A stretch of 64,000 nucleotides of DNA from Lytechinus pictus (GCF_037042905.1 NC_087251.1:22878001-22942000); one strand, 5' to 3'. Counted from the stretch's first letter, positions 1,613-45,400 are shown. The notes: generated from the letters alone by a model not told the origin. A program made the numbers and translations.

Positions 1613-1759
1613 CTACTGGAACCTGATCTGGTGGACATCAACGGCGCCATCGATGACCAGGGTGTTGACGTTCTGACATGCGATACGATGGGCATAATCC
1701 AAGTAGTGCTGGCCATTGACAGCAACCTTGTAACCATTTGCATCACACATGATGATAAG
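1613..1759 (-). CDS. Galectin last coding exon ([19 protein letters not shown]...QIRFQ*)
   Basis: cttcag acceptor, stop TAG at 1615-1613; AATAAA on the minus strand near 1433-1438. Confidence 0.94.
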   Translation of the reverse strand, partial: LIIMCDANGYKVAVNGQHYLDYAHRIACQNVNTLVIDGAVDVHQIRFQ

Positions 1760-7700: not shown

Positions 7701-10700
7701 TGCTGACAGCTTTCATGAAAGAGTACCCTGATCTGAATTAATGGCCAGAAAAGCAAGGTACAATTAAACAAATCAAAGAAAAAAAGAGAGAAAAAAATCA
7801 TATAAATTGATTTAATATCAACTTAACAATTAACAAAATATAAAACAAATGTAAATGTATGCAATGATCAGAAATGACAAGATGTACGCACAAAAAAAGG
7901 ACAGCCTATCAAATATATCCAAACTAAACTACATGGACTTAATTTGAGAACAAAATCACTTAAGTTCACAATCGACAGGCCAAGCTTAAAGTTATATCCT
8001 TTTAGAATTTCCAGTCTGATAACCCAAATCAAATTGAAAATGTCTATTTCTTAAAACAGTTTATGAACCAAAGGCCAACACCCATTATTACATAAACCCT
8101 TATCTGCATGGCTTTCAAAATCATAACTCTATTGACATTATTGATCTACATGTATTTCCTTTTCACCTTTAATATCTATTGAAAACAAACACCATTTTCC
8201 TTCCTATGATAAGGATATACCTTTAATAGACCAGGATATCCTATTGACAACTTTTCTCAGGACTTGAAGCATAAAATGTGAATTTATTACAACAAACAGA
8301 GTAATATAACTCACTGTGTCAGAAGTGTTAAAGCAAATTTTTGCATACCATTCCTGGACATGGCTATATTTGGTAATTGTAATTTAACATGCATTAAATT
8401 GGACTGGATAAAAGTGAGCACGTCACAAAAGATATCATAGAATGATGGTTCTCAAACAGTTTCTAATTCCCAATGATTAATTCCCTGGTAGGACTACAAC
8501 ATCTCTTTACTTACCGGGTTGACAGTGCTACCTGATCCATGGATGTACTGAAATTAAATTCAAGAAATGAAAACAAAATCATTATTGGGTGAAAAACTAT
8601 AACTTTATTTGTAGGTTATCATCAAACATGTCAATACTCTGCATGGATATTAGATATTGATGCACGGATAAAAGTCCATGGATGTACAGAAATTAAAGTC
8701 AAGAAATGAAAAAAAATCAATATTAGGTGGAAAAATACAACTTAAAGGTTACATTAAAACATGTAAATACTCTGTATAAATATTAGACATTAGGGAGTTT
8801 TTGTAACAACTACATGTACGCAGACACTTTCTGGAACATGGAGAATCTATTGTCAATTGCCCTTCGTGACACACAAGTCTTTGTCAAAAATCGGTGAATC
8901 AAAACAGCAGTGTCATCCTGGGGAGTGTTTCATCAACATTTTCATCCAACAAGTTGTCAGATCTGACATCTTTCTCTGATGTTGATTGGATAAGAGGTAC
9001 TGTTACTATGGTAACTGTCGGATAAAATGGGACTTGTCGGATAAAACGTCCGACAAGTCCTTTCATGAAACGCCCCCCTGAACTCTGGACAAACAACATA
9101 TTTGTAATTTTTCATCAGCTCAGAATTTTACGACTGGTCATCAGCTGTCCTGGTTTACCAACTACCGACAAAGTGCTCTAAGCTGTTCATTCTGATTTGA
9201 CATGCTTCTTCAATAGATTTACTATGTTGTAGAATCTGTACCCGTTGCAATTGTGAAAACTCGCTATTGATACTGATGCACAGATAAAAATCATTAATTT
9301 TAGTTTACTGGCAAATCATGGAATTTATAGTACACAGCATATGGGAGAGTAAATTGCCTGCAAATTACACCCCCCAAAAAAAAATCTCGGACAGTATCAA
9401 AAATTTCAATTCATTTCTCTCATTTTTTTTCCTGCTTTCATAAGAACCAACTTGTTGTATCAGGAAGGACTTTCTATTGAAGTGAAATTTTACTGTGAAA
9501 CACCCCCCCCCCTTCATGAATCAAAATACATGTATAATGGACTTACCCCGGCAGCCTGTCCCTGGAACCGTACAGAGTGAATATTCACCTTACCATCAAT
9601 GGCAATGGTATCGATGCGTTTTAGGTTCTTGACACGGTGGTTGTACTCAAGGAAATGCTGGCCATTCACAGCAACCTATAGGGAAAACAGTCCAAAGTGA
9701 AACGGGCCTTCAAAACTAACTTATTTCAGCAGATGTGTAGTAATTACCTTAATTGGATGAGCCTGCACCTACGAATATTTTGCTTTACAGAAATGCGGTG
9801 GATCATCAAATCACGGGGAAATGAAATAATGTGGGCATTGTACATGCATGGCTTGTTTTAATCATCCATCATCATACATTTGTCATGCATGCCACTTGGA
9901 CTAATGCATTGAAGGTTCTAACAGCACAAATTTGAATGAACATGGGCTGTTCAACAGTTTCAGGTTCTCACATTTCTGCAGAATCATATTACATTCTATA
10001 GTTGGACCCTTAGCAGGTCTTATGACAGATAACCAACCAGCAGAAAAATCCTGTACATTGCTCACACATTTCAAAACAAGAAGATAATTTTGGTTGGTGA
10101 GTTTAGCTGATTAATCCATTACTCTCTCCCAGACATGTAGCTGAAATTCCTGAAAATGTAATACCATTCAAGCTCCGTTGGAGAGCTCTCTATTCAAATC
10201 ATTTAGTTTGCTATGACAAGCTGATGGAAATCTCAATGTAATTTTCAGAACATATAGGGCAATTAATCTTGGTACATGATTAATATTAAACCACGGTGTA
10301 ATTCAAGACGAATGAATGAATATTTTAATTGACCCATGCCATGATTTCAGTGAGTGAATTTTAATGAGCATATGCCAAAGACTGAATTTGGAACCCGGAA
10401 TGTTATAATACCTTGAACTGGTTGGCTTCACAGAGGATGATGATCTCAAAGTTCTGGTTGAAAGCAAAAGGGAAGTGAGACTGGCCCCTCTCTTCTGCTC
10501 CCCACTGTTGATTCTTCAGGGTGTTTCGCACACACACGTTAGCCCCAAAGCGTGGGTTGAAGTGCAGGGCGATGTCTGATCGTGGATTCTTGCTGGTACC
10601 ACACTGCAAGTTGATGTGGAATCTATTCAAAAAGAGAAGAAATATAGTTATTTGATAGTGCACTTTACCTTGTTGCCAGGAGACTATGATGCAGTAAATA

Positions 10701-16700: not shown

Positions 16701-19700
16701 TATGTCTAAGTTTTATGAACTAGGTTCATATACTTTCGAAGTTATGACAACATTTCAAAAACTTAACCTTGGTTAAGATTTTGATATTGATTCCCCCAAC
16801 ATGGTCTAAGTTCATTGACCCTAAATGACCTTTGACCTTGGTCATGTGACCTGAAACTCAGGAAGGATGTTCAGTAATACTTGATTAACCTTATGTCCAA
16901 GTTTCATGAACTAGGCCCAATCGCAGTTTCACAGTTGTGTGTGCGGAAATGGTAGTTTGTTAACAGAAATCTACTCCCAACTCCCTGCGCTATGCAAGTA
17001 GTTTTTACGAACGCCATGCATGAGTCGTGTTTACTTTTTTGCACATGATTGCAACAACAGCGCTAATTGGCTGATTCCATGCCGTTAGTTTGGCTCAGTA
17101 CTGTTGTACGTTTCGGAGGTACAGAGGAATTTCTCAAGATTAGTGGACCCCCTGCTGAGATTTTCCAGACATTCCATTTCCGTCCTGCTTGCGAAAGCCC
17201 GTAATCATCCTCTGAGTAGGTGGCAACAATGTTCTGGGCTGCGTAACACAAAGATTAGCGATCAATCGCTAAATGAACTGACCAATCAATATCAATGTTA
17301 CACGCGCATTTGGTTTAAAATTCTGACCAGGAACCAATCAGTGTGGTGCTTTCATATTTGCAATTCATCGCAAACATTTGTTAGCCCAGATCTTAAGTTT
17401 TATTACTGCAAACTATTAGACTATCCCAATCATTTGGTATTAAACTATGATCAGTCATTATTTATGCATACAAGTGCATATTAAATGAATAGACATGTGT
17501 TTAATATCAATTATACATAAATGGGAGCTTTCTGTACCGACTTTTTCTCTGAATTTCTCTTATCAAATCTGCAGAGTAATGGTACTGTCTGTGATTTATT
17601 TTGAGTAAAGGCTTTGAAATTATGATTATCTATGTAAATCTAGTGTTAAAGCTTTGACAACGAGACATTATCATTAAAATCAGATGCTGTGAAATAATGG
17701 TATACAGACTGAAATCTGAGTATGGTGAAAATCACATGTAGACACAGTTAAGCACACATGGGTGATGGGTACAATGTACAGTGTAATTATACTGAAAAGA
17801 TCAAACAGAATGTCCTGATTATTGTGCTCATTACATGATAATTACCAATTTTCTACTGCTACCATGCGGCACTTATGTTTTATTTATGCACGGCTGCACG
17901 CAAACACATTTAATGTTAAGTCTGTTTTCAAATTATCTTATGCCATATTACCATAAATTTAAACTTTCAGGATAAAATACAGATCTCTTCTGGTGAATTA
18001 TTTCCAGAGAGTAACAAATAACACCACTTTCCCTGCATCCATTCAGGCCAAGTGTTATTGATTGTCATCTTCTTTTTTTGACAAATCAAATTTTAAAATG
18101 ATAAAATGTGTTTCTAGTGCAAGACATGTGATTACTTTCAAAATGATGAATTTATCATACATTTTCCCCATGAGGAATTATTCATAGAAAATTGTATAGA
18201 CCAGTACAGAGGGAAGATTTCAAATGAACTATTCATTGCACACGAGACAACGCAGCTCTGGGGAAAACCCACTATTCTCAGATGAGTGGGGAAAACCCAG
18301 TTGTCTCAGAGTAGTGGAAAAAATATACCCACTGATTACCTGTCTGCTCCTGCTGGTACAAATCCCTGGATGAAAATCATCTTCCCTGGGGCCATGGATC
18401 CTCCAAATATGGAGCTCACATAGGGAACAGCCTGGAGAGAGAAAGAAAGTCAGTAAGAGATANNNNNNNNNNNNNNNNNNNNNNNNNNNNNNNNNNNNNN
18501 NNNNNNNNNNNNNNNNNNNNNNNNNNNNNNNNNNNNNNNNNNNNNNNNNNNNNNNNNNNNNNNNNNNNNNNNNNNNNNNNNNNNNNNNNNNNNNNNNNNN
18601 NNNNNNNNNNNNNNNNNNNNNNNNNNNNNNNNNNNNNNNNNNNNNNNNNNNNNNNNNNNNNNNNNNNNNNNNNNNNNTAACGTTGCTCTCATGTGATGTC
18701 ACTGAATCAAAAAATTGAAAATTCATATCATACTTGTTTGTAATTTTCATAAAAAATTCATGGATTTGTATTTCTGATTGTATCTCAAGCTCTCGACATC
18801 AGGTTGGACTTCCCCTTTAAAAGGGTAGAGCGTCTGACCAATTAAACTGACCTCATGTTTTGCCCATCTTCCTCATTTGGCCATTACATACCATCTACAA
18901 CCTTGCTAGCTATCTTAGAGCTATCTTTGCTTACTGGCTACCAGCTGTCTCTGACCCTCAGATTGTGAATGATGATCTCTAATTATAACATTGTCTGTCA
19001 TCCAGAGGTCATATCTAAAAGGTCATTTTCCTAATGCAACAGTAATCCAACTGAAGCGTGTGCTTTTCTAAGTGCCTGGATCTCAGCCTAAATTATTTCA
19101 TTCATTGATTTACAGGGGAATCCTAACCAAATAGAAAGTTTATTTTGATATGGAAATAAAAAGAAAAATGTCAGGGTTTACCAATGAAAAAAGATCCGAC
19201 AAATAATAAGAAACTTGACATTAACATGGATTTCAAATTTGGTGCAAGTATAGGCCTTTGTATTTGATGGTACTGTGCTGTAGGTTAGGGATCAACTAAA
19301 CTCCATTTTATCTAAAAATAAATCTTTTTCCAAAGTGTTACTCAGAAACTCAGAAATTTTTTGATTCTATGATCAGGTACATGTAACATACTTTGCTCCA
19401 ATACTGTGGAGAGAAAGGGAAGGTGCTTGAAAGGAATTTACGAGAAAACCACAAATTCCTCAAAATCAAGTCGAAGAATTTCTTGCCCATTTTTTTCTCA
19501 AACTTTCACCATTGAAGATAATTTTCTATGTATTCTGCTTTCGCAAAGCAATTTAGCCAAGTTTGGATATATATATATAATATAATTATAATATATAAAA
19601 AGAAAACATGTTTGTTTTTTTGAAGCAATTTTAGTTTTATAATGTTCATTTATGGTTTCATACGTGTATGATTTCAATAGAATTTCCTGCATAAGTGAAT

Positions 19701-22700
19701 TTTTACCCCCCAATAACTTGTTACTTTATATTGAAAGTACTGATTTTTCTGTCACAAATTTCGAGAAATAGTGCACTTTATTTCACACTCAACCCACTCA
19801 AAATTTCTGCCTCATTACACCATAAATGGGAATAGAAACTGCATGGATTGCTATAAATTCTATAGTTTTTATGATATACAAATACAATGATTCAAAACAC
19901 TTTACCATTTACAAATGTAATAGTAGTAATTATCTAAATAAGCAATATTAACTCCTATACAGTATGTACCTTGTATGTAATAATCACTTGTCTCTTTTAT
20001 AAAAACAGAAAACAAAGTGCAGCTACACATACATGTATGTACAGCCACTTGCAACATGCAGCACTCCGGTACCCACTTGTACCCCATGTATCTGATATAC
20101 AATGTACAAAAAGCTGTATATGAAAAATCACCCAAGTTATATGTACATGTACATGTACATATAACTTGGGTGATTTTTCATACAGCTTTTTGTACATTAT
20201 TCATGACTTAACTGCGGACTATTTCTTGTGTTAGTGACATTTCAACATTTTTTATTGTGATAAGCTCCTAACAGTTGAAATATGTGTGTGTGTTTTAAGC
20301 TTAGTAAAAATTTTCTGAGCAAAAGTCCTGAAATGATGTATTGATTTTAAATTTGCTTGTACAACCTGGCAAGAGCCTCAAACAAGTTACATCGCCATCT
20401 GGATAACACATGACTTTTTTTTCTTGTACACTGTACATGATTTTCTTATTTACAGTATACCCACACGATTGTTGCAGGTGCTGGGTTAAGTGTGGCAAAT
20501 GTATGTACAATGAAGATAGGCCTATTTTTTTCTGAGGCATTATTTTATAGTGAGATTTGAAGCACCGACCCCATTGATCAGACTAGGGAGTTATTTGCCA
20601 ATTCACTTTAAATAATTTTTTGGTACTTCCCAAACCAAAGGACAGAAAATCATAGGCCTAACTGTTTATAAAAGTATGAAGTAAAAGTTGAACTGAAAGG
20701 ATTTTACTTCTTCGATATGGTACAACAGGCTTTAAAGATGATTGTGATGCATGCAGATCTGCAAATATCATAGCAGCAAAATAAAACTACTATCCTAAAG
20801 CAATCGACGTTGTCCCCAATTCCAGGACATTTTCCCACAATTCCAATTCCAAGCTCCAGTGAATGCTTTTATCATGCTCATATTCATGTGAAATTAATCA
20901 ATGACTGTAGCCCTGTAATGCACGTAACATTTACTATGGCAGGCCTACTCTGTTGCAATGCATCAATTTAATTGCTCGCATGCACAAGCTTTAAAGGAGA
21001 ATGAAACCCTTGGAGCAAGTTAGTTTAATAAGAAAGCAGAAAAATCAAAGAATAAGATTAACAAAAGTTGAGTAAAAATTCCAACAAGCAAGAAAAAGGT
21101 TTAATGAGCATTTTCTCATTTTAATGATTTTGTCGAACAATTCCTGTAAGGAATTCCAGTTCCTCTCATAAAAAAAGAACATTTCAATAGACTAGATCAA
21201 AGAGTATTTAAGAAAAGGGGAAGTTGCGTGTGTGTGACATCACATGGCTCAAGATTCAAGTACTCAAGTAACTTTCTTCCTATTCATTCAATCTTCAAAC
21301 TTTCATTAACCTGTTTCTTTGATTGTTCTCTTTTATATGAATTCAACTGGTATGAAGGGTTTCATTCTCCTTTAATGCTAGTCTCCTACTGAACATCACA
21401 CATTATGTATCCCGAGTAGGCAGTTCACCATGGATGTATCCAGAACAACAATAATTCCTCAGCTGATGCTTTGTACATTGTACATGTAGCATACAGTATA
21501 CGTGCAATACTGATAGATATGCTAACCATCCATAATACAAAAAATTGTTAATTTAGACGGCAAGCATTTTGTGATGAGAGATGAATGTCATCCCCCACAC
21601 ATACATGTACACTTCTATGACCTTTTAATGCATGCATGGAGTGCTGCTTCATGTTTATGATTGCTGCATCCCTCTGATCGCTGATATGTACATGTTAATA
21701 CTGGTCTGTTGTTAATTCAGTTTCAAGAAGATGCAAACTTTAAATGTGAAAGGGGTGCTCCAGCAATGAGTAAAATCAAGGAAGGAAAATGAAGGAAAAT
21801 ATATTACATGTATGTTCATCATAGTTGCCAACTCTACTGCTTCTTTGTTGAAAATAGTTTAAACCCCTTTGTAAATTTTCAGGAGTCCAAAAAGAAAGAC
21901 ATAGGGAGAAATGAAAAAGAGAGAGAGAAAAAAAACAAGTGGAATGCCTCTGGCCGTCTCACCTGCATCACGCGATTCAATATAGCAGCAGTGCTGATTT
22001 TGAAAACTACTATAACTCGCACAAGATGTTCAGTGATACTTGGTTACTCTTATTTCCACGTTTTATGAACTAGACCAATACACTTAAATAGAGATATGAT
22101 GGCAATTCAACAAATACCCCCAACGTGGCCAAAGTTCTTTGACCTTACATGACCTTTGACCTTGATCATGTGACCTGAAACTCGCACAGGATGTTCAGTG
22201 ATACTTGATTACTATTATGTCCAAGTTTTATGAACTAGACCAACACACTTTCAAATTTATGGCTGTAATTCAACAAATACCCCAATTTGGCCAAAGTTCA
22301 TTGACCCTAAATGACCTTTGACCTTGATCATGTGACCTGAAACTTGCACAGGATGTTCAGTAATACTTGATTACTATTATGTCCAAGTTTCATGAATCAG
22401 ATCCATAAACTTTCAAAGTTATGATGGTAATTCAACAGATACCCCCAATTCGGCCAAAGTTCATTGACCCTAAATGACCTTTGACCTTGGTCATGTGATG
22501 TGAAACTCATGCAGGATGTTCAGTGATACTTGATTAACCCACGTATGTGAATGCAGGTGCAAGCTCCCTAGCATATGTATAGCGTCTTGACCGAGAGAGG
22601 GCTCACTCATCTTTAAAATTTAAATACCCCCGCGAAACTCGAACTTGTTGCTACCGGGTTGCTACTGACGCTTTGCGCGATATTGCTCTCACATCTAGGT

Positions 22701-25139
22701 CATTTGGGGAAACCCCAGAGAGGTGGCCAACCTCATCTTGTAATGAAAATCAAATATATGATACACATACATTCGTAGAAAACAATGGTAACATTCAAAA
22801 CAAGAAATCAAAACACCGGCAATCAATTTTGAATCAGCCGGCGGCAAGCGGGTGTGTCGGTCCCATATACTCGTAGGATATCACAGTAAATATTATCAGT
22901 ATTTATGAGGTTTCTTTAAAAAAAAATATTACCAATCTACAATTTTTCATACCTTTGTTTTGGTTTTATATCAAAATTGACTGGTATTGTTTAAACTGTC
23001 TTTCATTTCTAGCTATCCTACAGTTTTTTGTGCACTCATCTTGTGTTGTTGGTTTTGACCTTGTGTGGTGGTTTTATTTGTTCTTACTGTACTGTACACA
23101 CATTTAAATGCATGGAACAGCATATTAAGTGTTTGTCATTGTTGTGTCGATTTTGTGGGAGGAGGGTTATAACTGAATTGGGAAAGAAGGGGCATTCGTA
23201 TAGTGTATCAACCTACCATCAGATAATTCTAGAGAAATTTAATATTGACATTTCAGAGGACACTTTAGATATACACCCAAACAAATTTTGCAGCACATGC
23301 TATTGCCATCTCACAATCAAGAAACCATTACATTGGACACCAAAAAAATGGGACACACATAGGAGAACATCACACTGTCATACATGTACACATTTTAAAG
23401 AAACACAAACACCAGGCAGACCAAAGAAAAGAAAAGCTGGTGGCCGCCCCCCTGCAACAACAACACCCCAGTCTCACTTTTCTCAATTAGGAGTATCACT
23501 ATCAGGAACAACAGACAATCAAAAATACAACATCAATCAAGACACATTTCACATTGATAATTCACTACAATTCCTTTTGTGTTGTGTTTGTAGGTCTGTT
23601 GTGTCATGTCCTGTCGAGTCACCTTGTAACCACCTGTTTTGTCTTGACTGTATATCGTCTCTCTTTGTCAAAGTGTCTGTTAGCTGTCCTCTTTGTAACA
23701 TTCAATTTCATTATTCTCAAACACACACACCAGCCGCATACATCATCACATTACTACAAAATCTTCATGTTCAGTGTTCACATTGTAAAACATCCCTTCA
23801 CTACACCCAAACATCAGGCCATTCGTGTCATACTCGTGTAAACTGTGACCATACATACGCAAAATGTACGCAAATGGACCTCAACACCCAACAACGCCGG
23901 CAGATAGCCTCTGAATACCTCAAATGTCAGATGGCCAAGTCACATGATGGTATGTCAGCCAGCATAGGTTTAGCAGGTCGTGGAAAGGTAAATGCAAAAG
24001 TCTTATCTCCTAGCTACCGGTAGTTTAAAGTAACAATCATCATCACATATTTCAAACTTGCAGAAGATTTTGTGGAAGACGAACAAGTTAGGGTCTCAAA
24101 ATATATCATTCTCTTTATCATTGTCAGTCAAATTTATTTCAGAAGTTTCAACATTTAAAAAAGTTATTTCAATAGTCCCAGTAGATTTGAATTATGCAAG
24201 GTTGATCAGGTTGAATTCACATATAAAGGCAAATGATTGGGTATATATTACCCAAGTAATATTAGTAAATATGTATTTTATTATATACATATTATATATA
24301 TAATTTCAGTTTCATACATTTAAGTTTTCATACTGTAAAGAAATTAGCCATTAATGTATTTTAGTTCACAGTATTAGAAACAAATAAAATAATCATAATG
24401 GTGCATATATCATGTAAGTATAACAACAAAACTTTGCCCCCCCCCCACCAAACAAAACTAAAAATAACAAAAGAAAACATGGATTTCTAGAAAGTCATAG
24501 ATATCATTTAATTGCTATAATTTAACTATTTTCTAGATACACAACCCTGTATGTTGAATCCTCATTAGATATACATGTATTCTAAAAGATTTTAATAATT
24601 TTACACCATTATCTTGAATAATATAATGTTATTTTGAAAATGAAACTTCAGCGGTAACTTGCCATCTATATATTCTTACAGCCTATGAGAGCTTTCAAAA
24701 TTCCAAGCAGCATCGTACCAAGTACAACCTGTTCATCATCCACCCTCCGTAAAAGAACGTCAATAATACATCATGTAAGGCAAGAGGTTTCTGGTGGGAG
24801 AGAGGCAGCCGATACTCAACAGCAACATGAAGTTTCCCAATCTGCAAGCATCACAGGGATCTTGGGCCCACAACCCCTCCATATTCCATCAAGAGACATT
24901 ATGGAGCTGAAAAGCTTCTTCAGCTTGAGTTGGAGAAAGCTACGACGTTTGAAGAGGTGACTTGAACAATCTTTGTTATGGACATTCATGTAATTACACC
25001 CCGGAAGAGGGTACTCAGATTTGGTTTGGACGGGGATCTGCAGCTGAAGAGTTCATACCCATACCTATTAAGTTAATGGGTCATTTAGTCAGAAAGGAAT
25101 AATAATAATAACAATAATAATAATAATAACAATTATAAT

Positions 25140-25172
<33 letters not shown>

Positions 25173-28100
25173 CTGCTCAACATTTGCATCACATGATACG
25201 TCTCTATGGACTTTTAAAGTACTTTGGATGTTCTTACCCCGGCTTTAGCCCCTGGAGCCTTTATACAGATCTCAGTGCATTCAAGGAATGAATCCTACCA
25301 GGTACCCACTTACAACACCTGGGTCGAGTGTGGCAAATGTAGATTAATATCTTGCTAAAGGACATTGGTACTGTGGTGGGATTTGAACCCCAGATCTCGT
25401 GGTTCACATTCCCTTGACTTATCCACAGCACCTTTACAGGGTACCAATTAAAAGGGATTTCATTTTTTTGTAAAGACCACTTTTGCATCTCGAATGATAT
25501 TCTCAAACGACGAGAATATATACGGGCGAGAATATCATTCTTTAAATAAAGTTACCCATGTTTTGGAGGTTTTCTGGCACAAAACATTACCCCATGCTTT
25601 GGGATTTCTTTAAAAAAAGTGACCCATTAGAGTGGCACATATCCCCATATACCTTATAAGATGAGTATTCCCCCCCCCCCCCACCCCACCAGGAATTACA
25701 CCTCATACTAGATTAAGTCATTAATACAATAAAAATACAATACCTAAATATATTTCTTAACAGCTGGCTAAAAGAACGGAGAATTTCTACAGGAAATGAG
25801 AGGGAAGTGAGGAGACTCCAAGATGATGTGGTAAAAAACAACATTACCGGGGAACTGTTGCCTCTCCAACAAGGCTCAAGTGAGACTGGCATGGAAATTA
25901 AGGAGACCCCGGTAGTAACAGTAAGCAGCCTCAGTGCCCTTGTCAAGGACTTACTAGAGGAATATGATCGGTGAGTTCTACCTGTGATAATGTAAACAAA
26001 ACCATTAAAGCAAATCATTAACATAACAAAAGAAGAAAGATATTTTAAATATCATTAAAAATGATTACTGAATGCACCAATTACAAAAAAAAATGATAGG
26101 GATGAATTCACAAGAGAGTTTTAAACCTCCTTTGTGAATTTGGGCCATAGTGTTTCTGATATTGATATCTATTCCTTATCCTCAGAAGCATTATGATTTT
26201 ATTCTGGTAATATAATTTTATTAATTAAACCCATTTAAATCAAATTAAATAGCCCTTTGAATAATGCAATAATATCCTATTTCTACATATCTACAGACTT
26301 GGAGAGCTCACCTGGCATGACGACCACATCCCCGAAGGAGAAATTTGGTTGAAAGTGGGAGGCGACAAAGGGGGAGGAACTTTCAAGCTAATGGTGCAAT
26401 TGGCCAATGTGAAGCGACCCAATAGCCTCCACAACACCCGGGTGATCATGTTGTTCCCTGGATCTGACTCCACTTACAACCTCGATGTCTCTCTGGAGAC
26501 CATTAGATGCCAAATTGCTGATTTGGAGTCAATGTCATGGCGGTGTGTTTTCTTCTTCTGTTGAATAAAATATTAATATCCATAAAAATCAAAAAGATTA
26601 CCAGAACCTATAAAATTTCAATGAGTAAGATTTCTAATGTGAATGTAGTTATTTGGTATGTGAATTTTATTGTGTCTATCTCATATTTTGTCTTTATACA
26701 GAGGGAAAACCATGAAAGTCTTTGCCTTCGGCGACTATGAATATCTGACCCGCATGTATGGACTCACTGGCCCCAATGGTAAGCCTTACTTTCATAAACA
26801 TTATATATACATATATATTACTTTGATTGAATAGAGGTAATTAAAAAAAAAAAATAATTTCTCTTGACTTGTATCCCCATTTTTTTTTTCTTCACCAGGC
26901 CGTCATTGCTGTCTCTACTGTGAGATGACCAAGAAGGAAATGGCTGACCCACCAATGGCTGTCCCCCGTCAGCGAAGCCTGCAGACCCTCAAGGAATCCC
27001 TGAACCACTTCAAAACCTGTGGCATCCCAAAGGAATCTAATAACGTCATCAGATCCCCATTCTTTGACATTCCAATAAATAGGGTAAGATATTTAAGAAA
27101 AAAATGATTTCAATAGCCAAATGCTTAATCAGTAGCCAGAATATAACTCTCACCAGGGGTGGGGTGGGTGTGTAATCGGATCTGTATCTTACCACAGACC
27201 TTTATGCTTATCGGGTTATAGCTACTTTAAACCCCTCAGGAAGACAAACATTCAGAACATTCAAAAGTGAAATCTTAATTTCATCTGCAATGATGACAAT
27301 GAAAATTGTTATTAATACCTCTGATATTATAAGCCCTTTTCTCTTATTTATCAGGTCTGTCCTCCTGGGCTCCATATCTCCCTCGGGGTCTTCTTGAAGC
27401 ACTTCAACTCGCTCTGCCAAGCATGTCACACTCTGGACCTGGAGATTGGCCAGTCCTTGGCAAAAAGTCCTACAGACCAACTGGAAGCAAAAGAGGCCTT
27501 CAAACAGCAGCTGAAGAAGCTGAGTCTCCAGTCAAGACTGAAGCTTGCTGAGGAAGAACTCCACGACCTCATGGACCAGCACATGATGGTTGGACTTCTT
27601 TACCCTGAAGCTGAACCGCCCACCCTCATCCTGGAAATGGCTGAAGAGAAGAAGAGAGAGAAAGTTACACTGGTTAGTATCTTGGATGTCACACTGGCAG
27701 TATTGTAAATACGAGTTGCATACGTTTTAATCTTAAATCATGTATAGATGTACCAAATGCATCTTTAACTAAAATTAATATAAAATTTAACATATAAAAT
27801 CTTTTTTTATTTGTAGGAGAAGGAAATAGGCAAAATACCAGAAATGACAGTTCACTCTGGACCAACTAATGTTGGTCTAGAAGAAGCACTACAGCAGTTG
27901 AGAGTGAGCAGACAGGCGTACCATGGTCGTTCATTTGTAGGGAACCATGTACATAAATGTTTACAGGTGAGTAGAGTATATCATGAAAAGTAAGAACATT
28001 CCTGAAATATACTACTATATTTACACAAATTATAGTAATTCACATTGTCTTTCTTTTGAATAATACAAGAAAATATAAATTCTAGATGTTTGCTTCTTGC

Positions 28101-31100
28101 CTAATGTCCACTTTATTCTAATAGTAAATGTCACTATCCTTTTACTTTGAACCTATCTTCGTGTACCTTGTTCCAACAGCCTGAGAACACTGATCTGATC
28201 ACTGCTGCTATATCAAAGAAGGTACAGTCACTCTGCCCCAACGACCGGGACCTCATCCAGAAGGCAGAAGATATCGCCAGCAAGTATAATACTTTGCTAA
28301 AGCTGTTCGGGGCATGCCACCGGGGTATAAACACGGGTACTTTCCTGGACGACTCAGTCATCGACAAGCTGGGTAAGAGTCTAAGAGATCATGATCATAA
28401 AGGTCAGCTGCAAAAAAAAAATGAAATGCAAGTAATTTTCATATCAAATAAATAAAGAGTGACAGAGCAAGAAAATATCAATTGACACTGAAGAAGCAAA
28501 AATATTACTAGAAAATAACATTTATAGATCTCTATTTTTGTTTTTTCTATCGTTTATTTACTGACAGACAAAGACATCAAAGAGTATATGTTGTTCTACC
28601 GTCAGAACTTCCCCACAGAGAGCGTGACCCCCAAACAGCATCTATTGCAGTATCATGTCATCCCCTGGTTCAGAGACTGGAGAGCAAGCCTTGGGATGAT
28701 GGGTGAACAAGGGGGAGAGTCGGTCCACTGCCAACTCAACAACATTTCAAGAGATTTGAGGGGCTACAACGATGACCTCAAACTCAATATACAATGTGTA
28801 AAAAATCAGTGGATATTAAGTAGCCCCTCAAATTACAATAAGTTCAGTTAGATCCACTCTAAATACCCTCTCAATCTCGGAGTAGAGAAGTAGAGAAGTG
28901 TACACTGAATTCTATGTATACAGAGCTTGTGGGGTCTTTAATTTTTTTTATTCATCTTATTTTATTCTATTATTTTTTATATTTTTTATTTGCAATCTAA
29001 GAATATATTCTTGCCTTGGGAATTAAACTTAGAATTAAATAAGAGTGTATATAGCATTAAACAAAAAATTGATTCGAATGGCTTTACTGAAGTAGGTCAC
29101 CTTTTTGTTCTCTGTAATAGACATGCAGTAGAGAATTATGTTGAAACTTTAATCTATGACTATATTTCAAAAACATTGTATAGAATAGAATGATTGATTA
29201 GAATGCATTATGTATTTACATATATAGTCTAATAAAGTCTGTTCTGCAATATCTGGAATCTGCAATATCAGCTAGATACCAGTATCCATTAGCGGATGAA
29301 GTACAGAGAATCAGAGATACATGTACTACTGCCAGTGTGTAGGATTTAGGATCAGTGGACAAGTATCCAGACTTATTATTATTATTATCATCATTATTAT
29401 TATCATCATTAATTATTATTACTTTTATTTGTATCAATACATTTAACTTCATCAGGCTGTAGACATTTGTTTATGAACAAAAATCAGAAACATTTACGTC
29501 TGGTCACAAAGAGTGTACCAATATTTATGTCTGGATAACTTGTGCACTAGACTAATGTGCACATTATTGCATTTGACTTTGACAAGTTCGGTTGATATTG
29601 AGAATAGAGAGAGAATAAAAGAATAAATACATCAACTATGACAGAATTTGAGAAAACAGTGGCTGGAATAAGGTCTGTGATGTTAATTGTCTTTGTTAAT
29701 GCAGATTTCTAAACATGATGGGTGATCATAATCATATGGATGTGATAACTGACAAGCTGTTTGGAATCACTTCTGGGTACATTTTTGTAGAAAAAGTCAC
29801 AGAATTTTGACAGACATATATACATGTATACACAGTTGTAAATTTAGGAAACACAAGAGCTAGAGCCAACAGCCCACAGAAACTCCCCAACAGAGTAATA
29901 TTTTCCCAAGGGATTATATTTTCCAAAAAGCCTGCAGTGCTCAGCTGAGGGAAAATATAGTCCGAGGGAAAAAATAAAAAATAAAATAACATACATGTAG
30001 CATTTCCATTGGAGATCCGCGTGCTCAAGTTGCTGCAGCTCTTATCCCCTCTAGGCTTTACTGTAGAAGATGTGATGGCATTTGGACGTTCATGTACCTC
30101 TACTCAGTATCTGTAATAGACCCAGGCGCGTAGCCAGGGGGGAGGGGGGGGGGGCGCTAGCCCCCCCCCCCCAAAAAAAAAAAACGCCAGCCAAAAAGAG
30201 AGAGAGAGAGAGAGAAAAAAAAAAGTAAGAGGACGTAAAATTATATAAAGAAAAAGCAGACAAAGAAACATTTTTTAATATTCAGACAAGGATTATAAGA
30301 GTCGAGAACGGTACAACGAATCATCTTCTTACTCGAATAATTTAATGAAATGTCAACACTCCCCCCCCCTGCACCCACACGCTTCGCGTGCTCACTACCG
30401 CCCCCCCCCCCCTAAAATAAAATCCTAGCTACGTGGGTGAATAGACCTATTAAATTTAATATAATACAACATTAATACTCAAAGACACTAATAAATTAAA
30501 TAATACTAGGTCTAGACCTAATAATAATATATGCCTATTATAATATACCATTACCAATTACAATAACAATTACATTTCTATACTATAGTATAGGCCCTAG
30601 ACAATACGCATTACCATTACATTAGCATTGACTCTCTACGCTTTAAATCAGCTGGAGTGGGCCCTACGGCCCCTACTCCCTTGCTCAAAATTATACCCGA
30701 CCCGGAACATCTAGCATTCTGTAGACTCTACTTCTAGTTCTAACTTCTAGGACTAGGCCTATCATAAAAATAATACAATTGGGTCTATTATTATGTTAAC
30801 AACACAATTGAAGTGCCTTGTTCAAGTTGTTCCACGATTTAGCCAAAAGTGTGATACAGCAACGCTGTTTCGTGTTAGGGCCGACTGTGTATACGCGTAC
30901 CCCCGACCAAGTTGTCTCAGTCATCGAAGTGGGACTGGGAGTCTACGCCTACGCAAACGGCGGTGGAGCGTACACCGCGCCGCTGTAATCGAACATCTGC
31001 GGCTTTTGGCAAACAGCACATTGTATTTTACAGTAAGTTAGACAAGTAAACATACTTTGATCAAGATCACATTCAAATCAGACACTCTCAAACATTCATC

Positions 31101-34100
31101 TCCATTAAAATCACGATCTTAACCGACTACAGTGCTTGAATGGTGACGTCATGTTCAGACAGTGGCAATTTTTCAACCAAAAATCTTTAATATTTACCTA
31201 AAAGTAGCACCAACCCAAGGAGAAGTCTAGTTGATCAAAAAACTGTAGGATGGTCAAAAATGAGAAGAATGAGAAGTATATGTCCTCGTTCCCTATTATG
31301 CAAAAGCTAAAAATAGTAAAAATTATAGTTTTTCCTAAAACGCATATTTTGGGAAGGTTTAAAAATTGAAATTTTATTTAACAATTTTTTGGCAAAATAA
31401 GGTATTTTATCATAAAGGTATAATTCAAAAAATAGATACGATTGGTAATGATTGCTACCCTCGAAATAATAATATGAATACGTATTTCAGGGGTATGTTT
31501 TTGTTTCACATCATGTTTTAGTCATTTTTGATTGGTAGTTTGGCAAACATGTGGCAACTTTTGTTTACATTCTTCCTCGGTTCGCGACGATTCGACCTAC
31601 TTTGTGGATGACGTCATAAGGCAAAATGGATGCGCACGTTACGCGCCCCTACAGTAAATTACGTGAACCTTATGTATAAGTTTCATGAACTAGGTCCATA
31701 TATTTTCTAAGTTATGATGACATTTCAAAAACTTAACCTTAGGTTAAGATTTTGATGTTGATTCCCCCAACATGGTCTAAGTTCATTGACCCTAAATGAC
31801 CTTTGACCTTGGTCATGTGACATGAAACTCAGGCAGGATGTTCAGTAATACTTGATTAACCTTATGATTAAGTTTCATGAACTAGGTCCATATACTTTCT
31901 AAGTTATGCTGTCATTTCAAAAACTTAACCTCAGGTTAAGATTTGGTGTTGACGCCGCCGCCGCCGTCGCCGCCGTCGGAAAAGCGGCGCCTATAGTCTC
32001 ACTCTGCTATGCAGGTGAGACAAAAACCCTTAAAGAAATCAAATCCAAATAGACTAATTTTTTTCTACAATTCTTGGGCCAGATTTTGTGAGGTGAAAAG
32101 TATCCATCTACCAGAATACGGTCCCTCAGACCCAACATGGGGGAGGGGGGTAGTGCAGCATTCCAGTGCACCATGGATTCTGAAAATCTGTCACATTTCC
32201 TCCATTTGGAACTTTTTATGAAAAAAAAGAAGAAAATAGTCAATGAAGGTACACTGTAGTTTATAAAGGAAAATTTGACCAAAAAATGAAATAAAAGAAA
32301 TTATGAGCTATGAATGTTATCAAGTTAATAATATTTATGAAGATAAAGATGCCAATGTCAATGTAACCCAGATGTATGATGTCACACAACTATCCCCCAA
32401 TATGAAAACATTTCTTTAAACTTCTGTATTTACTCATTCTAATGCTAGTGTAAACTCTTCGTTCACAATATATTTGCAAAACCTAAATATTACATGGCCT
32501 CCCATATTGAAGAAGAATACCTGATCAACAGAAAGACTCTATATCTTGGCCCAAATGTACAATGATATCACACATCTTGCTACATGTAGCATTGCCAATA
32601 TGACAATCTACAAAGCATGAGTGATTTATGCTCATGAATAATTTCCTTTATTCCATTTTGCTTAAACCTTTATTGATCTGATTCTTTGACTTTTAATTTA
32701 TTTTTAATAATGGTTTTGTTTTAAATACCGGTACAATTTAACTGGTTTTAAGGTTTTCATTCTCTGAGAAAAGAGCACAACTGAGATTACTAGGAAACCA
32801 TATGAATTTGAACTCAGCAAATTAAATAAGTCACAAAAATATTATGTACATGTAAACAGCAAACGTGTACCAAAAGGGATTCAGGGAGCAAGTGCATAGT
32901 GACAAGCATTCAAACAAATATATCTTAATAATAAATGACTACCTTTACTTCTCAAATTAATGAAAATAAATGCCATTTAATCCCTTTCTGCATTCTGGGC
33001 TCCCACAACCCAGAATCCATTTAGTAGCATTTCCGATGAAAATTGTTCATTCACCTGGAAAGCTATTTGAACGTTGATATTGATCTCACAGACGGAAGTG
33101 ACATGTAACATTGACATGTGACCAGTGGCTATTCAACAAATGTAAATTTATACAAGCAACCTCCATGCATATCTTAATAAAATCTGTGTTTATCATTCTA
33201 ATGCAAATTTGCTGATTACAAATCAAATACCGATATACATACAAGCTTGAAATACTTTTGAGAAGGTATACCTTGGATCACATGCTCTTTAGCTACATGT
33301 ACCCTTTATGTGGTTATGAATCTACAATAAGATTTCAGGAGATATATTTTCCTTTGAAAATTCACCTTATATTCATTGAATGGAAAAAACTTGCATGTAC
33401 TTGAAGGAAGAGACTTCTTGTTACTTTCTTTAAGAACATAATTTTTCTCCTATTCCAAAATAATTTATTTGGTATGTTTGATTGGCAAAAACGAATCATG
33501 CTAATCGTATCACATAACAATCAGCACTGATAACAATGCATAAATTAAACAACAACCTCCTAGGCATTGTTAAACATACATGTACATGTAATACACTATT
33601 CATGTAGTACAATAATCATCTATTCAATTGTTTACAAAAATATGACCGTACAAATGTTATTTAAAGAAATATCACTCTTTTTGTGTAATGACAATTGGGG
33701 TGTTTTTTAGATTTAAAAAAAAAAGAAATATTGCATAAAAATCTATCAACGACAAAATTAATGATTTAGAGTGCAAGGAGCGCCATATCGACCTTACAAA
33801 AAGGAAAATAAATAGGAAAGCTTATTAAGTAATAATCTAATCAAATTTGATATATCCATTTCAATACATTGATTAGGGAGTTTGTACCTCTTTTTTATAA
33901 ATGCAGTATTCAAGTTGTGTATTGGTCGAAACATTCATATATATGGCCATAAAGGTGGGCCTGCATATAGGTGGTAGGCCTATCGTTACATTTGTGCGAC
34001 TAGCACAGAAATGATTAAAGGAATACAATTTTAAATACATGTGCTACATGGGCTAATTTGGTATCATATTAAAGGGAGACTTTACTTTAAAGAAACAGCA

Positions 34101-41019: not shown

Positions 41020-42441
41020 ATGGCGACTGGGCCGGCGGCATCCGAGCCGGACCATACAATAACGAGTACGGATGAAGATATTTGGATGATACAAAGACCA
41101 CGTCGAAAAAAAAGCATTTCGTACCAACCAGAAAAAAGAAAAAGAGAAAAGAGTGACGATATTACAATTGAAAATATTAATCAAAACGCATCGTCAGACT
41201 CTGACTCGAATACATCATATCGTACTCCAGGTTTTTCCTCGACCAAAAGATTGTCTGATTTCAAGCTATTTATAGCACCTATAGATAGACAGAAGAAATT
41301 GAACTTAAGGAATATTGATCCCTTAAAAGTAAAAAAAAGCGATCAGAGATGTGAGTTCACAACCAGTAGAGTTTATCAAACCAATTAGCACTGGGTTGCT
41401 GGTAAAATGTATCAACCTAAAGCAGATGAAATCCATCTCACAGATTCAAAACATAGGTAATATACCAGTAAAGGTCACGGAAAGTAGGTCGGGAACTAAA
41501 GGAGTGATATATGGTGTCCCAACTGAAACATCAGAAGAGGATATTCTTGAAGAATTGAGAGACCAGAAAGTGACAGCAGTAAAAAGAATAGTAAAGAAAG
41601 ACCAGAGAAACAAAAATGACAAAGAAAGAGAAGGTGTTGATAACAATCAGCCTACTTTTATTCCCTTGAGGAGTGTGATTCTTACTCGGGCAGACCTCCC
41701 TCAGAATGTCAATCTAGGCTACCAGATGTTTACAGTAAAACCATATATCCCACCTGTATCTAGATGTTTTAAGTGTCAAAGGTATGGTCACACTGCTGAT
41801 ATATGCAGATCTCAGATTAGATGTGTTAGATGTGGAGATCATCATAATTTTGATCAATGCCCGAAGAAATTGACACCAATATGTGCCAATTGTGGAGGTG
41901 AACACTCCGCTGCATTTAAAGGATGCCAGCAGGCAAAAAAAGCAAAAGAAGTACAAGAAATAAAGATAACAAGAAAGCTAACATATGCTGAAGCATCCCA
42001 GGTCTGGAAAACAAAAAGTGAAAAAAATGTCACACAGACAGTCACTGGAGATGCGAAAGAATTTTCCCAATCAGTACCTAAGTTAAGAGTAAAAACCTAT
42101 GTAACAGATAACCAGAGTAAAGTTACAAATCCACAGGTAGCAACGGTTCCAAGCGAACTACCTATGGAGACTAACCTTCCTGACAACACCCAACAAAGGG
42201 ATACACCACTATCTGCTGTTAAAGACCAGGCTACCAGGTCAGCCGATACATCGGCAAAGAACACCACACCTAATTTTATAAGTCTAGCTAGTGATGAGCA
42301 AATTGTTGTTTTTATATGTCAATTAATTATGTCATTAACTGAAGGGAGAGAAGAGAAGAAATAAATGCTTTAATTTTAACTGCTGCAAGAAGATTGCGGC
42401 AACAAAAAAAGGAGATCATAACTCAACAACGCAGGAACTAA
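41020..42441 (+). pseudogene. LINE ORF1 (gag-like, three CCHC knuckles) with two apparent single-base frameshifts
   Basis: CFKCQRYGHTADIC, CVRCGDHHNFDQC, CANCGGEHSAAFKGC. Frame switch in the A8 run 41331-41338 gives DPLKVKK/AIRDVSSQ. A likely second switch near 42358-42361 continues INALILTAARRL...RRN* to 42441. Either could be a sequencing error. Confidence 0.75.
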
Positions 42442-45400
42442 CGCTTTCTTTGCCCTACTTTCCATTCTTCAATGGAATTCTCAGGGCTTATTAGGGCACG
42501 GACAAGAGCTACTTAATCATCTAAAAACAAATAAAGAATATGATTTAATTTGTGTTCAAGAAACGTGGTTTTATGATAATAGTTCACTTTGTATTCCAAA
42601 TTATACATGCCTCCCAAGAAATAGGGAAGGTCAACGAAGAGGGGGTTGTGCAATATATATTCACGATTGGATTAAGTACGAAGATCCAATCAATGATTCA
42701 AGTCTAGAATTACAACAAGTTAACATATATGTCACCAATAAAAAAATATCTATCATCAACTTTTATAATCCATGCAAAAGATTAAACGAATCAATTCTAA
42801 ACACATTGTTGAAGAATGTTAATAAAACAGATAACCTAATAATCTTAGGTGATTTCAACGCTCATAGTACCCTCTGGGGCAGTGACAAAACCGACAGAAA
42901 CGGACAAGCCATTGAGCAATTTATATATGAGAATAACTTAATAGTATTGAATGATAAAACAGGAACTAGACTTGATCCTTGTACTGGAAAGCTTTCGTGC
43001 TTAGATCTATGTATGTCCTCCCCATCACTGGCCGGTAAGGCGATATGGAAGGTTATGGAAGATTCGGGGAGCGATCATTTTCCAATTATTATTCAAATAA
43101 CACTTGGAAAGAAAGGAAAAAATCATGAAAATCTAAGTAATCAGGCCAAAGATAACATGTCTCATGAACATATCTCTTTCAAGAATGTTAACTGGCCCAT
43201 ATTTGCATACAAATGTGAAAATATCATAAAAAATGAAATAATTAAATCTGAAGATGGTATTAAGAACATTTTTTATTCATTTATGGAACGCTTGAAGGAA
43301 TGTATTCATGAAGCAATCCCGAAAAAAAGAAAGACGGGAAAAAATCCTGTCCCATGGTGGAACAAGGAATGTACTGAAAAGATTAAAGAAAGAAATAGAA
43401 TAAGAAACCATCTATCAAGAAAAATCACACTTGATAGAATTAACGAATACAAAAAAAAGAAGGCAGAAGCCCAACGAGTTCTCCGGAAAGCGGAAAGAGA
43501 ATATTGGCAAGCTTTTTGCAGAAGACTAGACAGATTCATGCCAGAGACAAAGATATGGTCATGTATAAAACGTTTAAATGGTGTACCTGTCAAAAAATCA
43601 CAAAATATGCCTATTTTGATGGAGAAAGGTAAAGCCATTACGTCCTTAACAGAGAGAGTAGAGATTTTTGGAACTTATTTCCAATCCTTAGGACAGAAAA
43701 AAAAAGATTCCAATAAAACATTAACCAAGGAAGTACAAAATTCTTTCTACCAAAATGAACATGTTATTAATGAACCTTTCTCGAAGAATGAATTTGAGAA
43801 AGCAGTTATATCTACTAAATTTGCTGCTCCAGGAAAAGATAATATTCCATACATTGTATACGAAAATATGCCAAAAAGCACAAAAGAAATTATGTTGAAC
43901 ATTATTAATAGAATATGGGAATCCGGGGATATCCCGAGTTCTCTAAAACACTCAATTTTAGTGCCAATCTTGAAATCTGGTAAGGACTCAAAAAATGTTA
44001 TCTCCTACAGACCAATATCACTTACATCTTGTTTTGCCAAAGTTATAGAGCGTATGATAAAAGATAGATTGCAATGGTACATAGATAAAAATAACTTATT
44101 GCCTAATTTCATCAGCGGTTTTAGAAAAGGTCGTAGTACTACTGACAATATTGTTTTATTAGAAAATGACATTCAAAAATCTATCAATTGCAGTGAGCAC
44201 ACTCTTGCAGTATTTTTGGATGTCGAAAAGGCTTATGACAGTCTTTGGATTGATGGATTACTGTACAAACTCACTCAATGTGGTATAGGAGGAAATATGT
44301 TACATTTTTTAGAAAATTATCTAACAGAACGTACCTTTCAGGTAAGAGTTACAAATACTGAATCCAGAACATTCCAAGTCCATAACGGACTCCCCCAGGG
44401 GAGTGTTCTGAGTCCCCTTTTATATAATGTCATGATGAGAGATATTCCAATTGATCCTGAAGTGACAATATCCACATATGCTGATGATTGTGCAGTATGG
44501 TTTTCTGGGAAAAATGTAGAGAATATTAGATTAAGGATACAAACTTATCTAGATGTATTATGTACCTGGTTTAAAGACTGGGGCTTCAATTTTTCTATTG
44601 AGAAGACTGTTCCGGTATTTTTCACTAAGCTCACAAACGTTACTCCTCCAACAGTCAAGTTTGAAGGGAGTATACTCACTTATAAAAATAATCACCGTTT
44701 CCTAGGAATGATATTTGATAGTAAATTGTCTTGGCATCCCCATATAGAGAACGTAGTTTCAAGAAGTAAAAGGAAATTAAATATATTGCGAAGTTTAACA
44801 GGAACTAAATGGGGAAGTTCATCTAAGTCCTTACTTATGGTTTACAGGGCAATTATTAGATTAATTTTTGATTATGGTTGTCAAGCTTATGATAGTGCTC
44901 CAGTATCTACAAAAAAATTGTTAGACTCGGTGCAATATCAAGCACTCAGAATATGTGCTGGTGGGCTGCCATTAACATCGCTAGTTTCACTGCAGGTGGA
45001 AATGGGAGAACCCCCTTTAGATTTAAGAAGGCAAATGTTATCAAGCAAGTATAGACAAAATATAGAAAGACATAATAATCACCCATTAATAACACGTATC
45101 AAACCATGCTGGCAGTTCGATTATCTTAAAGGTAAGAATGTTAGTAAACCGTTTGGTTATAGGCTCCAATCCAAGATAGGAAAAGAAATTAGTATCGAAA
45201 ATGTTATTTCTCCATCCTTTCCCCCTTGGTTATTTTGTCCACCAGTTGTATCTACTGAATTGAGTTCACAAATCAAGAAATCGGATCATCCAATACAATT
45301 ACAACAATTGAGTTTGGAATTGATACATACAAAATGGTCACACCAACTCCATATATACACTGATGGATCCAAAGCCCCTGAAAAGGGGATTAGCTCAGCT

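Follow-up and report, generated by a model that had tools for sequence, protein, structure and literature searches.

A candidate autonomous Chapaev transposon with a RAG1-like N-terminal region in the sea urchin Lytechinus pictus

A transposon was identified in a 64,000-nt stretch of the genome of Lytechinus pictus (C7:22878001-22942000 of an 812-Mb assembly). We refer to this whole stretch as the window, and positions follow its numbering unless a contig is named. The element spanned 22540-31665 (9,126 bp). We conclude with high confidence that it is a full-length autonomous Chapaev transposon of the subgroup in which an N-terminal Chapa zinc domain is followed by a RING domain. The hallmark set of Chapaev was complete in the element, comprising the termini, terminal inverted repeats (TIRs), 4-bp target-site duplications (TSDs; AACC and GGAT), a DUF1280 core, and the Asp-Asp-Glu (DDE) residues and motifs in their order. 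Four copies at least 99% identical (99.0-99.9%) were present in the assembly. Two were full-length with open frames and two, on C6, were damaged. This indicates that the family was, judging from the sequences, very recently mobile. The element is a young, well-preserved addition to the published Chapaev class and no new class.

Ends, target site and copies

The element began with CACGTA and ended with TACGTG. AACC at 22536-22539 was followed by the 5' TIR, CACGTATGTGAATGCAGGTGC (22540-22560), and the 3' TIR, CAGTAAATTACGTG (31645-31665), was followed by the second AACC at 31666-31669; TIRs and TSD copies are given on the plus strand. The two ends were identical at 15 of 21 positions when compared as an inverted repeat. 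At least this level was reached by only 10 of 200,000 random 21-mer pairs drawn from the window. These ends, the TIR identity and the AACC duplication had been proposed in a preliminary description of the same DNA, and all were recovered at the same positions.

The insertion interrupted one unit of a tandem repeat with a period of 162 bp. The left part of this host array (22014-22536, 3.2 copies) was detected by Tandem Repeats Finder, and the array restarted at 31666 and continued 3' of the element. When joined, the two flanks rebuilt one unit. The neighbouring unit at about 31856 read CTTGATTAACCTTATG and contained a single AACC, and the unoccupied target as seen there was GATTAACCTTATG, again with AACC once. 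The empty site could thus be read directly from the neighbouring unit, as had been suggested before, and the duplication was 4 bp long.

The queries for a search of the whole assembly were the two ends of the element, its exon 1 and its 3' region, and few candidates were scored per search. The second full-length copy was found at C15:25649433-25658601 on the minus strand. It was 9,169 bp long and 99.4-99.9% identical to the window copy, and it carried GGAT at both flanks. Its similarity to the window copy was lost at identical first and last bases, and similarity among copies began at the 5' TIR. The completeness of the element, and the expectation that a search with both ends would return a copy with a different 4-bp duplication, were both borne out by this copy. 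The coding sequences of the two copies differed by one conservative amino-acid change (D to E). One damaged copy ended at C6:1656821 and kept only the first 6,681 bp, with an in-frame 6-nt insertion in exon 1 and an AG-to-AT change in the acceptor of exon 3; it shared the 5' end with the window copy. The other (C6:26780956-26798532) shared the 3' end. It lacked the first 681 bp, had gained 8 nt in exon 1 and lost 15 nt in exon 4, and carried, close to its 3' end, a foreign stretch of about 9.1 kb.

The common termini, unrelated flanks and different 4-bp duplications indicated transposition and not segmental duplication. Identity of at least 99% across different contigs pointed to a very recent burst. 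From these comparisons, the element can fairly be described as young and possibly active, which agrees with the earlier description.

Internal to the TIRs, a subterminal inverted repeat was found at 23003-23030 with its partner at 31236-31263 (28 nt, 86% complementary, with a 16-nt exact core; E = 1e-4). It might, speculatively, be a candidate transposase-binding site. The 3' non-coding part (28852-31644, plus strand) contained low-complexity stretches and short dispersed-repeat fragments. No second gene or RAG2-like open reading frame (ORF) was found there; further ORFs in the remaining 2.8 kb were no longer than about 100 aa and matched no Pfam domain. A search against Rfam, and a Pfam search of the left-over ORFs of the element, gave no match. 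Two stretches of about 90-100 bp in this part (29883-29973 and 30123-30220) had dozens of genome matches at about 80% identity. They are either captured short dispersed repeats or low-complexity sequence.

Two further observations concern possible relatives of the copies. Sequencing runs labelled with at least four organisms carried 25-75% of the 31-mers of the element. Copies nearly identical to the element are therefore present in at least two labelled species or samples, an observation of possible relevance to horizontal transfer or to very recent shared ancestry. In addition, a diverged sequence at C3:30892705-30903794 (minus strand) was 71-76% identical in nucleotides to segments of the two end regions of the element, and a DUF1280 match lay nearby. 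Its similarity was partly due to the 162-bp host repeat. This locus may be an older sister family.

The transposase gene and its family

Ten exons with GT-AG boundaries on the plus strand (23112-28851) were joined into a stop-free predicted frame of 936 aa (2,811 nt). Exon 1 (23112-23987, residues 1-292) encoded a Chapa/NZD-like zinc domain, a basic stretch, a RING (C157-C195) and a zinc finger. It was followed by exon 2 (24682-24956, residues 293-384) and exon 3 (25764-25970, residues 384-453). Exon 4 (26297-26542, residues 453-535) carried the Pfam DUF1280 match and the motif GGDKGG, with D476 at 26364-26366. The motif FGDYEY with D546 (26733-26735) lay in exon 5 (26702-26778, residues 535-561), and the C(2)C ligands C565 and C568 (CLYC) lay in exon 6 (26899-27083, residues 561-622). 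Exon 7 (27355-27672, residues 623-728) contained the LH motif L628-H629 and a long helical insertion. Exons 8 (27817-27966, residues 729-778) and 9 (28180-28372, residues 779-843) led to exon 10 (28568-28851, residues 843-936 and the stop codon), which held the H(4)H motif H867/H872 (HLLQYH) and GEQGGES with E889 and E893.

The donor of exon 9 was placed at 28373 in preference to 28403. Use of 28403 gave a 946-aa model, whose 10 extra residues formed an insertion relative to all 19 aligned homologues and were absent from RefSeq models. We therefore preferred the 936-aa model, in which 28372 is the last base of exon 9; this is the length that had first been described. The junctions were checked with 12-residue peptides searched in RefSeq models of L. 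pictus and Strongylocentrotus purpuratus. Seven of the nine junctions (2/3 and 4/5 through 9/10) had exact counterparts in L. pictus models or in XP_794084.3 of S. purpuratus, and junction 3/4 was found in the latter protein with one substitution.

Fused full-length models that join exons 1 and 2 were found in Antedon, Diadema, Patiria, Ptychodera and Branchiostoma. A relative with this fused architecture was present as one uninterrupted ORF of 970 aa on a 3.8-kb Logan contig. The window model aligned end to end with proteins of 951-994 aa from other animals. These included P0018 of the crinoid Antedon (951 aa, 35% identity, residues 1-939 against 1-940), P0024, also of Antedon (975 aa), and P0081 (994 aa).

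Exon 4 matched DUF1280 (PF06918) with E = 2.5e-13 and 50.6 bits against a cut-off of 25, and homologues reached up to 81.7 bits. All four copies were matched in a genome scan with this profile. DUF1280 has been equated with Chapaev transposases by Majorek et al. (PMC3985635). According to Zhang et al. (PMC4079192), Chapaev is recognised by CAC/GTG termini, a TSD of 3-4 bp and three motifs, C(2)C, LH and H(4)H. In alignments of 20 and 29 sequences, D476, D546, C565xxC568, L628-H629, H867xxxxH872 and E889/E893 were invariant or at least 90% conserved. The candidate catalytic and zinc-binding residues picked out in the preliminary description (GGDKGG, FGDYEY, EQGGES, CxxC and HxxxxH) were thus all present.

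In contrast to DUF1280, the RAG1 core profile PF12940 matched no exon at E ≤ 1 and no full-length homologue at E ≤ 0.01. In the genome scan, PF12940 matched 22 other places at E ≤ 1 (17 over the cut-off), none of them in any copy of the element. The family profile found no RAG1 chain among PDB sequences. Since PF12940 matched elsewhere and DUF1280 matched all copies, the element did not group with RAG1L/Transib at the sequence level, in agreement with its earlier assignment to Chapaev.

The closest protein was that of S. purpuratus LOC589347 (XP_794084.3, P0159). Over exons 2-10 the two proteins were 88-89% identical in amino acids and stayed collinear across the junctions. The S. purpuratus protein is annotated without the N-terminal exon. 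The next closest proteins, of Diadema and L. variegatus, were about 55% identical. A maximum-likelihood tree built from 38 cores placed the window protein as sister to the S. purpuratus protein with support of 100/100. Both lay in an echinoid clade nested in an echinoderm clade, and the amphioxus, hemichordate, Hydra and sponge proteins formed separate clades. No protein of the congeneric L. variegatus exceeded 55%, whereas the Strongylocentrotus protein reached 88%. We drew no conclusion from this contrast because the annotation of transposons is patchy.

Several further Chapaev-like lineages were found within L. pictus. Distant loci at C17:10328400-10335100 (plus strand), C18:12621888-12624382 (minus strand), C10:12937124, C3:2162249 and C20:15997915 were 34-38% identical in the Chapa domain or matched DUF1280. 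The C17 locus contained three tandem Chapa-domain ORFs, the longest open frame reaching 613 aa.

Chapaev transposons were reportedly described by Kapitonov and Jurka in 2007 in Repbase Reports, and Yuan and Wessler are said to have placed Chapaev in CMC in 2011. In the case of Chapa+RING Chapaev elements, the L. pictus element shared the CAC...GTG termini, the 4-bp TSD, the DUF1280 core, the DDE residues with C(2)C, LH and H(4)H, and the N-terminal Chapa domain followed by RING. No name for the L. pictus family was found in the literature searched. Described Chapaev3 elements are about 2 kb long with one or two exons (PMC3014272, PMC4079192). Chapaev3 also has a TWA 3-bp TSD with insertion between A and T, whereas the window element had 4-bp duplications (AACC, GGAT), a length of 9.1 kb and ten exons, and it fell outside that group.

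Likeness to RAG1 and proposed mechanism

The N-terminal part of the protein resembled the non-core region of RAG1. Exon 1 gave a Pfam RING match and a weak RAG1_imp_bd match (16.4 bits, under the cut-off); the latter domain was above the cut-off in P0018 and P0081. When exon 1 was searched with phmmer against solved structures, the best matches were RAG1 chains, with residues 146-363 of 6oem aligned to residues 59-256. Eight Cys/His ligands (C12, C15, H55, C60, C63, H83, C89 and C92) were kept across 72 relatives. In an AlphaFold model of exon 1 (predicted local distance difference test score, pLDDT, 86), the RING and zinc finger were like those of the RAG1 dimerisation domain (1rmd) and TRAF6.

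The core fold was modelled with AlphaFold (AF2) on residues 280-951 of Antedon P0018, using the 29-sequence alignment (pLDDT 87, predicted template modelling score 0.76). RAG1 was the only strong match class in the PDB. The RAG1 core matched with a Foldseek E of 5e-15 and a VIA-align Z of 25.9, with 455 residues superposed at 3.9 Å onto RAG1 460-1007. It was followed by BbRAGL (Z 24.0), HzTransib (Z 22.7), P element transposase (Z 14.4) and Hermes (Z 9.2). The match of the predicted P0018 core to the RAG1 fold DDBD-PreR-RNH-ZnC2-ZnH2-CTD shows likeness of fold and not membership. We infer from this model that the window protein probably has a RAG1-like core fold as well. The order of zinc domain, RING, zinc finger and core would then be common to the window protein and full-length RAG1, the core being the fold predicted for the homologue, which matched RAG1 residues from about 460 to 1007.

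The spacing of the motifs was similar to that of RAG1. Mouse RAG1 has D708-19-C727xxC730 and H937xxxxH942-20-E962 (PMC4914335), and the window protein had D546-19-C565xxC568 and H867xxxxH872 followed after 17 or 21 residues by E889 or E893. The arrangement D...D-19-CxxC...HxxxxH-~20-E is the same in the window protein as in RAG1/RAG1L and Transib transposases. In RAG1, one zinc site is formed by C727/C730 together with H937/H942, the counterparts of CxxC and HxxxxH in the window protein. We infer the equivalence of the catalytic residues to D600/D708/E962 from motif order and spacing and not from a direct alignment, as the family profile finds no RAG1 by sequence. The catalytic glutamate is probably one of E889 and E893.

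These features suggested a RAG1/Transib-like DDE cut-and-paste mechanism with a zinc-braced insertion domain. The 936-aa protein would bind the CAC...GTG ends, and an RNase-H-like centre of D476, D546 and E889 or E893 would cut and rejoin DNA. The putative zinc site of C565/C568 and H867/H872 would brace the catalytic centre, in an arrangement as in RAG1 and Transib, and integration would take place with a 4-bp stagger.

Kapitonov and Koonin placed Chapaev within a broad Transib superfamily and described the Chapa domain and Chapa+RING Chapaev subgroups, which they related to how the RAG1 N-terminus arose (PMC4411706). The predicted whole-core match to RAG1 agrees with this placement near Transib. 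To our knowledge no CMC-type structure has been solved, and for this reason the core match does not discriminate against a CMC grouping. The N-RAG-TP protein of Aplysia californica, reported by Panchin and Moroz in 2008, is said to be a transposon protein with an N-terminus like the RAG1 non-core region. Its likeness to the window protein, compared by description, lies in this N-terminus, and its host is a mollusc, unlike the echinoderm host here.

It had been proposed that the element is relevant to the origin of the RAG1 non-core region. The element does bear on the RAG1 N-terminus, but the idea itself was already published (PMC4411706), and the N-terminal zinc domain of Chapaev and RAG1 was revisited structurally in a 2026 preprint, which describes experimental work on Chapaev, including validation of Chapa-domain function, as lacking (bioRxiv 10.64898/2026.01.24.700457). 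The literature likewise contains the general idea that Chapaev and RAG1 have their N-terminus and, distantly, their core in common. The value of the present element lies mainly in a candidate active Chapaev transposase in a laboratory sea urchin and in the correction of a misleading 'RAG1-like' annotation.

A stronger claim can be put forward tentatively, with the balance still against it. Both intact copies would represent an autonomous Chapaev that is active today, with a transposase matching full-length RAG1 from the zinc domain to the end of the core fold. The complete RAG1 blueprint would then be found in a cut-and-paste enzyme that is still at work and does not belong to the RAG/Transib lineage. 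Fusion of the non-core and core regions in an ancestor would be favoured over an N-RAG-TP-like module captured later. The element would also provide the first Chapaev transposase open to experiment, and its host is a sea urchin suited to laboratory breeding and manipulation; we know of no Chapaev transposase that has been studied biochemically. The low copy number, two intact copies, clear ends and reconstructable empty site offer a practical experimental start. The questions opened by the element are the 4-bp versus 5-bp stagger of a RAG1-shaped enzyme, hairpin intermediates, and the roles of the zinc domain and RING in a transposase.

Alternative readings and genomic setting

Several points weigh against the reading of the element as an intact autonomous transposon. 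RefSeq divides the transposase into two genes, with exon 1 apart from exons 2-10 (proteins P0001, P0231, P0230 and P0185). The 303-aa RefSeq protein P0001 consists of exon 1 read into intron 1, and the 561-aa protein P0231 (C7, exons 2-10) joins exon 3 to exon 5 and lacks exon 4 with D476. Exon 4 was skipped in the RefSeq models of both C7 and C15. Junction 1/2 occurred in no L. pictus or S. purpuratus model and was supported by homologues only. Logan runs labelled 'RNA?' contained 0.41-0.52 of the 5.9-kb gene stretch, which is close to the exon fraction, but those of them also matched with intron 2 contained 0.34-0.76 of it and were uninformative on splicing. The TIRs were short and imperfect. 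The searches, which scored few candidates, returned only four copies and no deletion derivatives. In addition, the core model derives from the crinoid homologue with 35% identity and not from the window protein itself.

One alternative is an element that is structurally complete but functionally dead or silenced. In that case no fused 936-aa product would be made, exon 1 and exons 2-10 would stay separate or exon 4 would be skipped, and the copies would be the remains of an ended burst. The split models P0001 and P0231 fit this, as do the S. purpuratus relative annotated without its N-terminal exon and a low copy number with two of four copies broken. However, two copies keep the 2,811-nt frame over ten exons with intact GT-AG boundaries, one conservative residue apart, and every catalytic and zinc-binding residue is retained. 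Transposon gene models from automatic annotation are often fragmentary, and the fused models from five other genera show the joined form. We consider a dead or silenced element unlikely, though not negligibly so.

Membership of the RAG1L/ProtoRAG/Transib lineage instead of Chapaev appeared very improbable. The family core fold is nearest to RAG1, BbRAGL and Transib, the N-terminus is RAG1-like, and Chapaev itself has been placed inside the broad Transib superfamily (PMC4411706). Against this, the PF12940 matches all lay outside the element copies, DUF1280 was found in all four, and no RAG1 chain was found in the PDB by sequence. The TSD of RAG1, RAG1L and Transib is 5 bp, whereas it was 4 bp in both complete copies. 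ProtoRAG has a RAG2-like gene and the window element has none, and beyond the CAC start it had no heptamer or nonamer like those of the RAG recombination signal sequence. We likewise gave very little credence to an immobile origin, in which the sequence would belong to a host gene or to a segmental duplication. RefSeq lists its pieces as ordinary protein-coding genes, and a relative with 88% amino-acid identity exists in S. purpuratus. But copy similarity ended exactly at the TIRs, between unrelated flanks with different 4-bp duplications, and the interrupted tandem repeat had its empty site in the neighbouring unit. 

The RefSeq models also have a consequence for surveys of RAG genes. A cluster mate of P0001, located on C6, carries the name 'V(D)J recombination-activating protein 1-like'. 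The split models and this label on a C6 exon 1 product could mislead echinoderm RAG surveys and inflate counts of RAG1 homologues. Three PF12940 loci were taken as genuine RAG1 core, at C4:15672347-15676589 (plus strand), C182:16498-18156 and C233:18651-20309. Upstream of the C4 locus there was a match to the Chapa/NZD portion of exon 1, which fits a true RAG1L gene. The C182 and C233 loci were apparently one sequence assembled twice.

The element had been described as lying in a galectin intron, and this part of the description was not upheld. Galectin carbohydrate-recognition-domain exons (PF00337) were found only at 1619-10627 on the minus strand (10406-10627, 9565-9717, 3268-3471 and 1619-1762), and these four were the only PF00337 matches reported for the whole assembly. 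The match at 9565-9717 contained one in-frame TAG. This region is a tandem-repeat galectin gene with two carbohydrate-recognition domains. Galectin exons were looked for on the far side of the element and none was found in the window. As all of them lie on one side, at least 11.9 kb away, an intron setting does not follow, and the element may equally be placed upstream of the galectin gene.

A run of 215 N at about 18300-18520 is an assembly gap or a masked run. On the other side of the element, a non-LTR (long terminal repeat) retrotransposon was read from translation only at 41020-46183 (plus strand). It contained a 337-aa ORF with CCHC-type zinc knuckles, followed by an uninterrupted 1,125-aa ORF with endonuclease-like, reverse-transcriptase-like (YADD) and RNase-H-like stretches.

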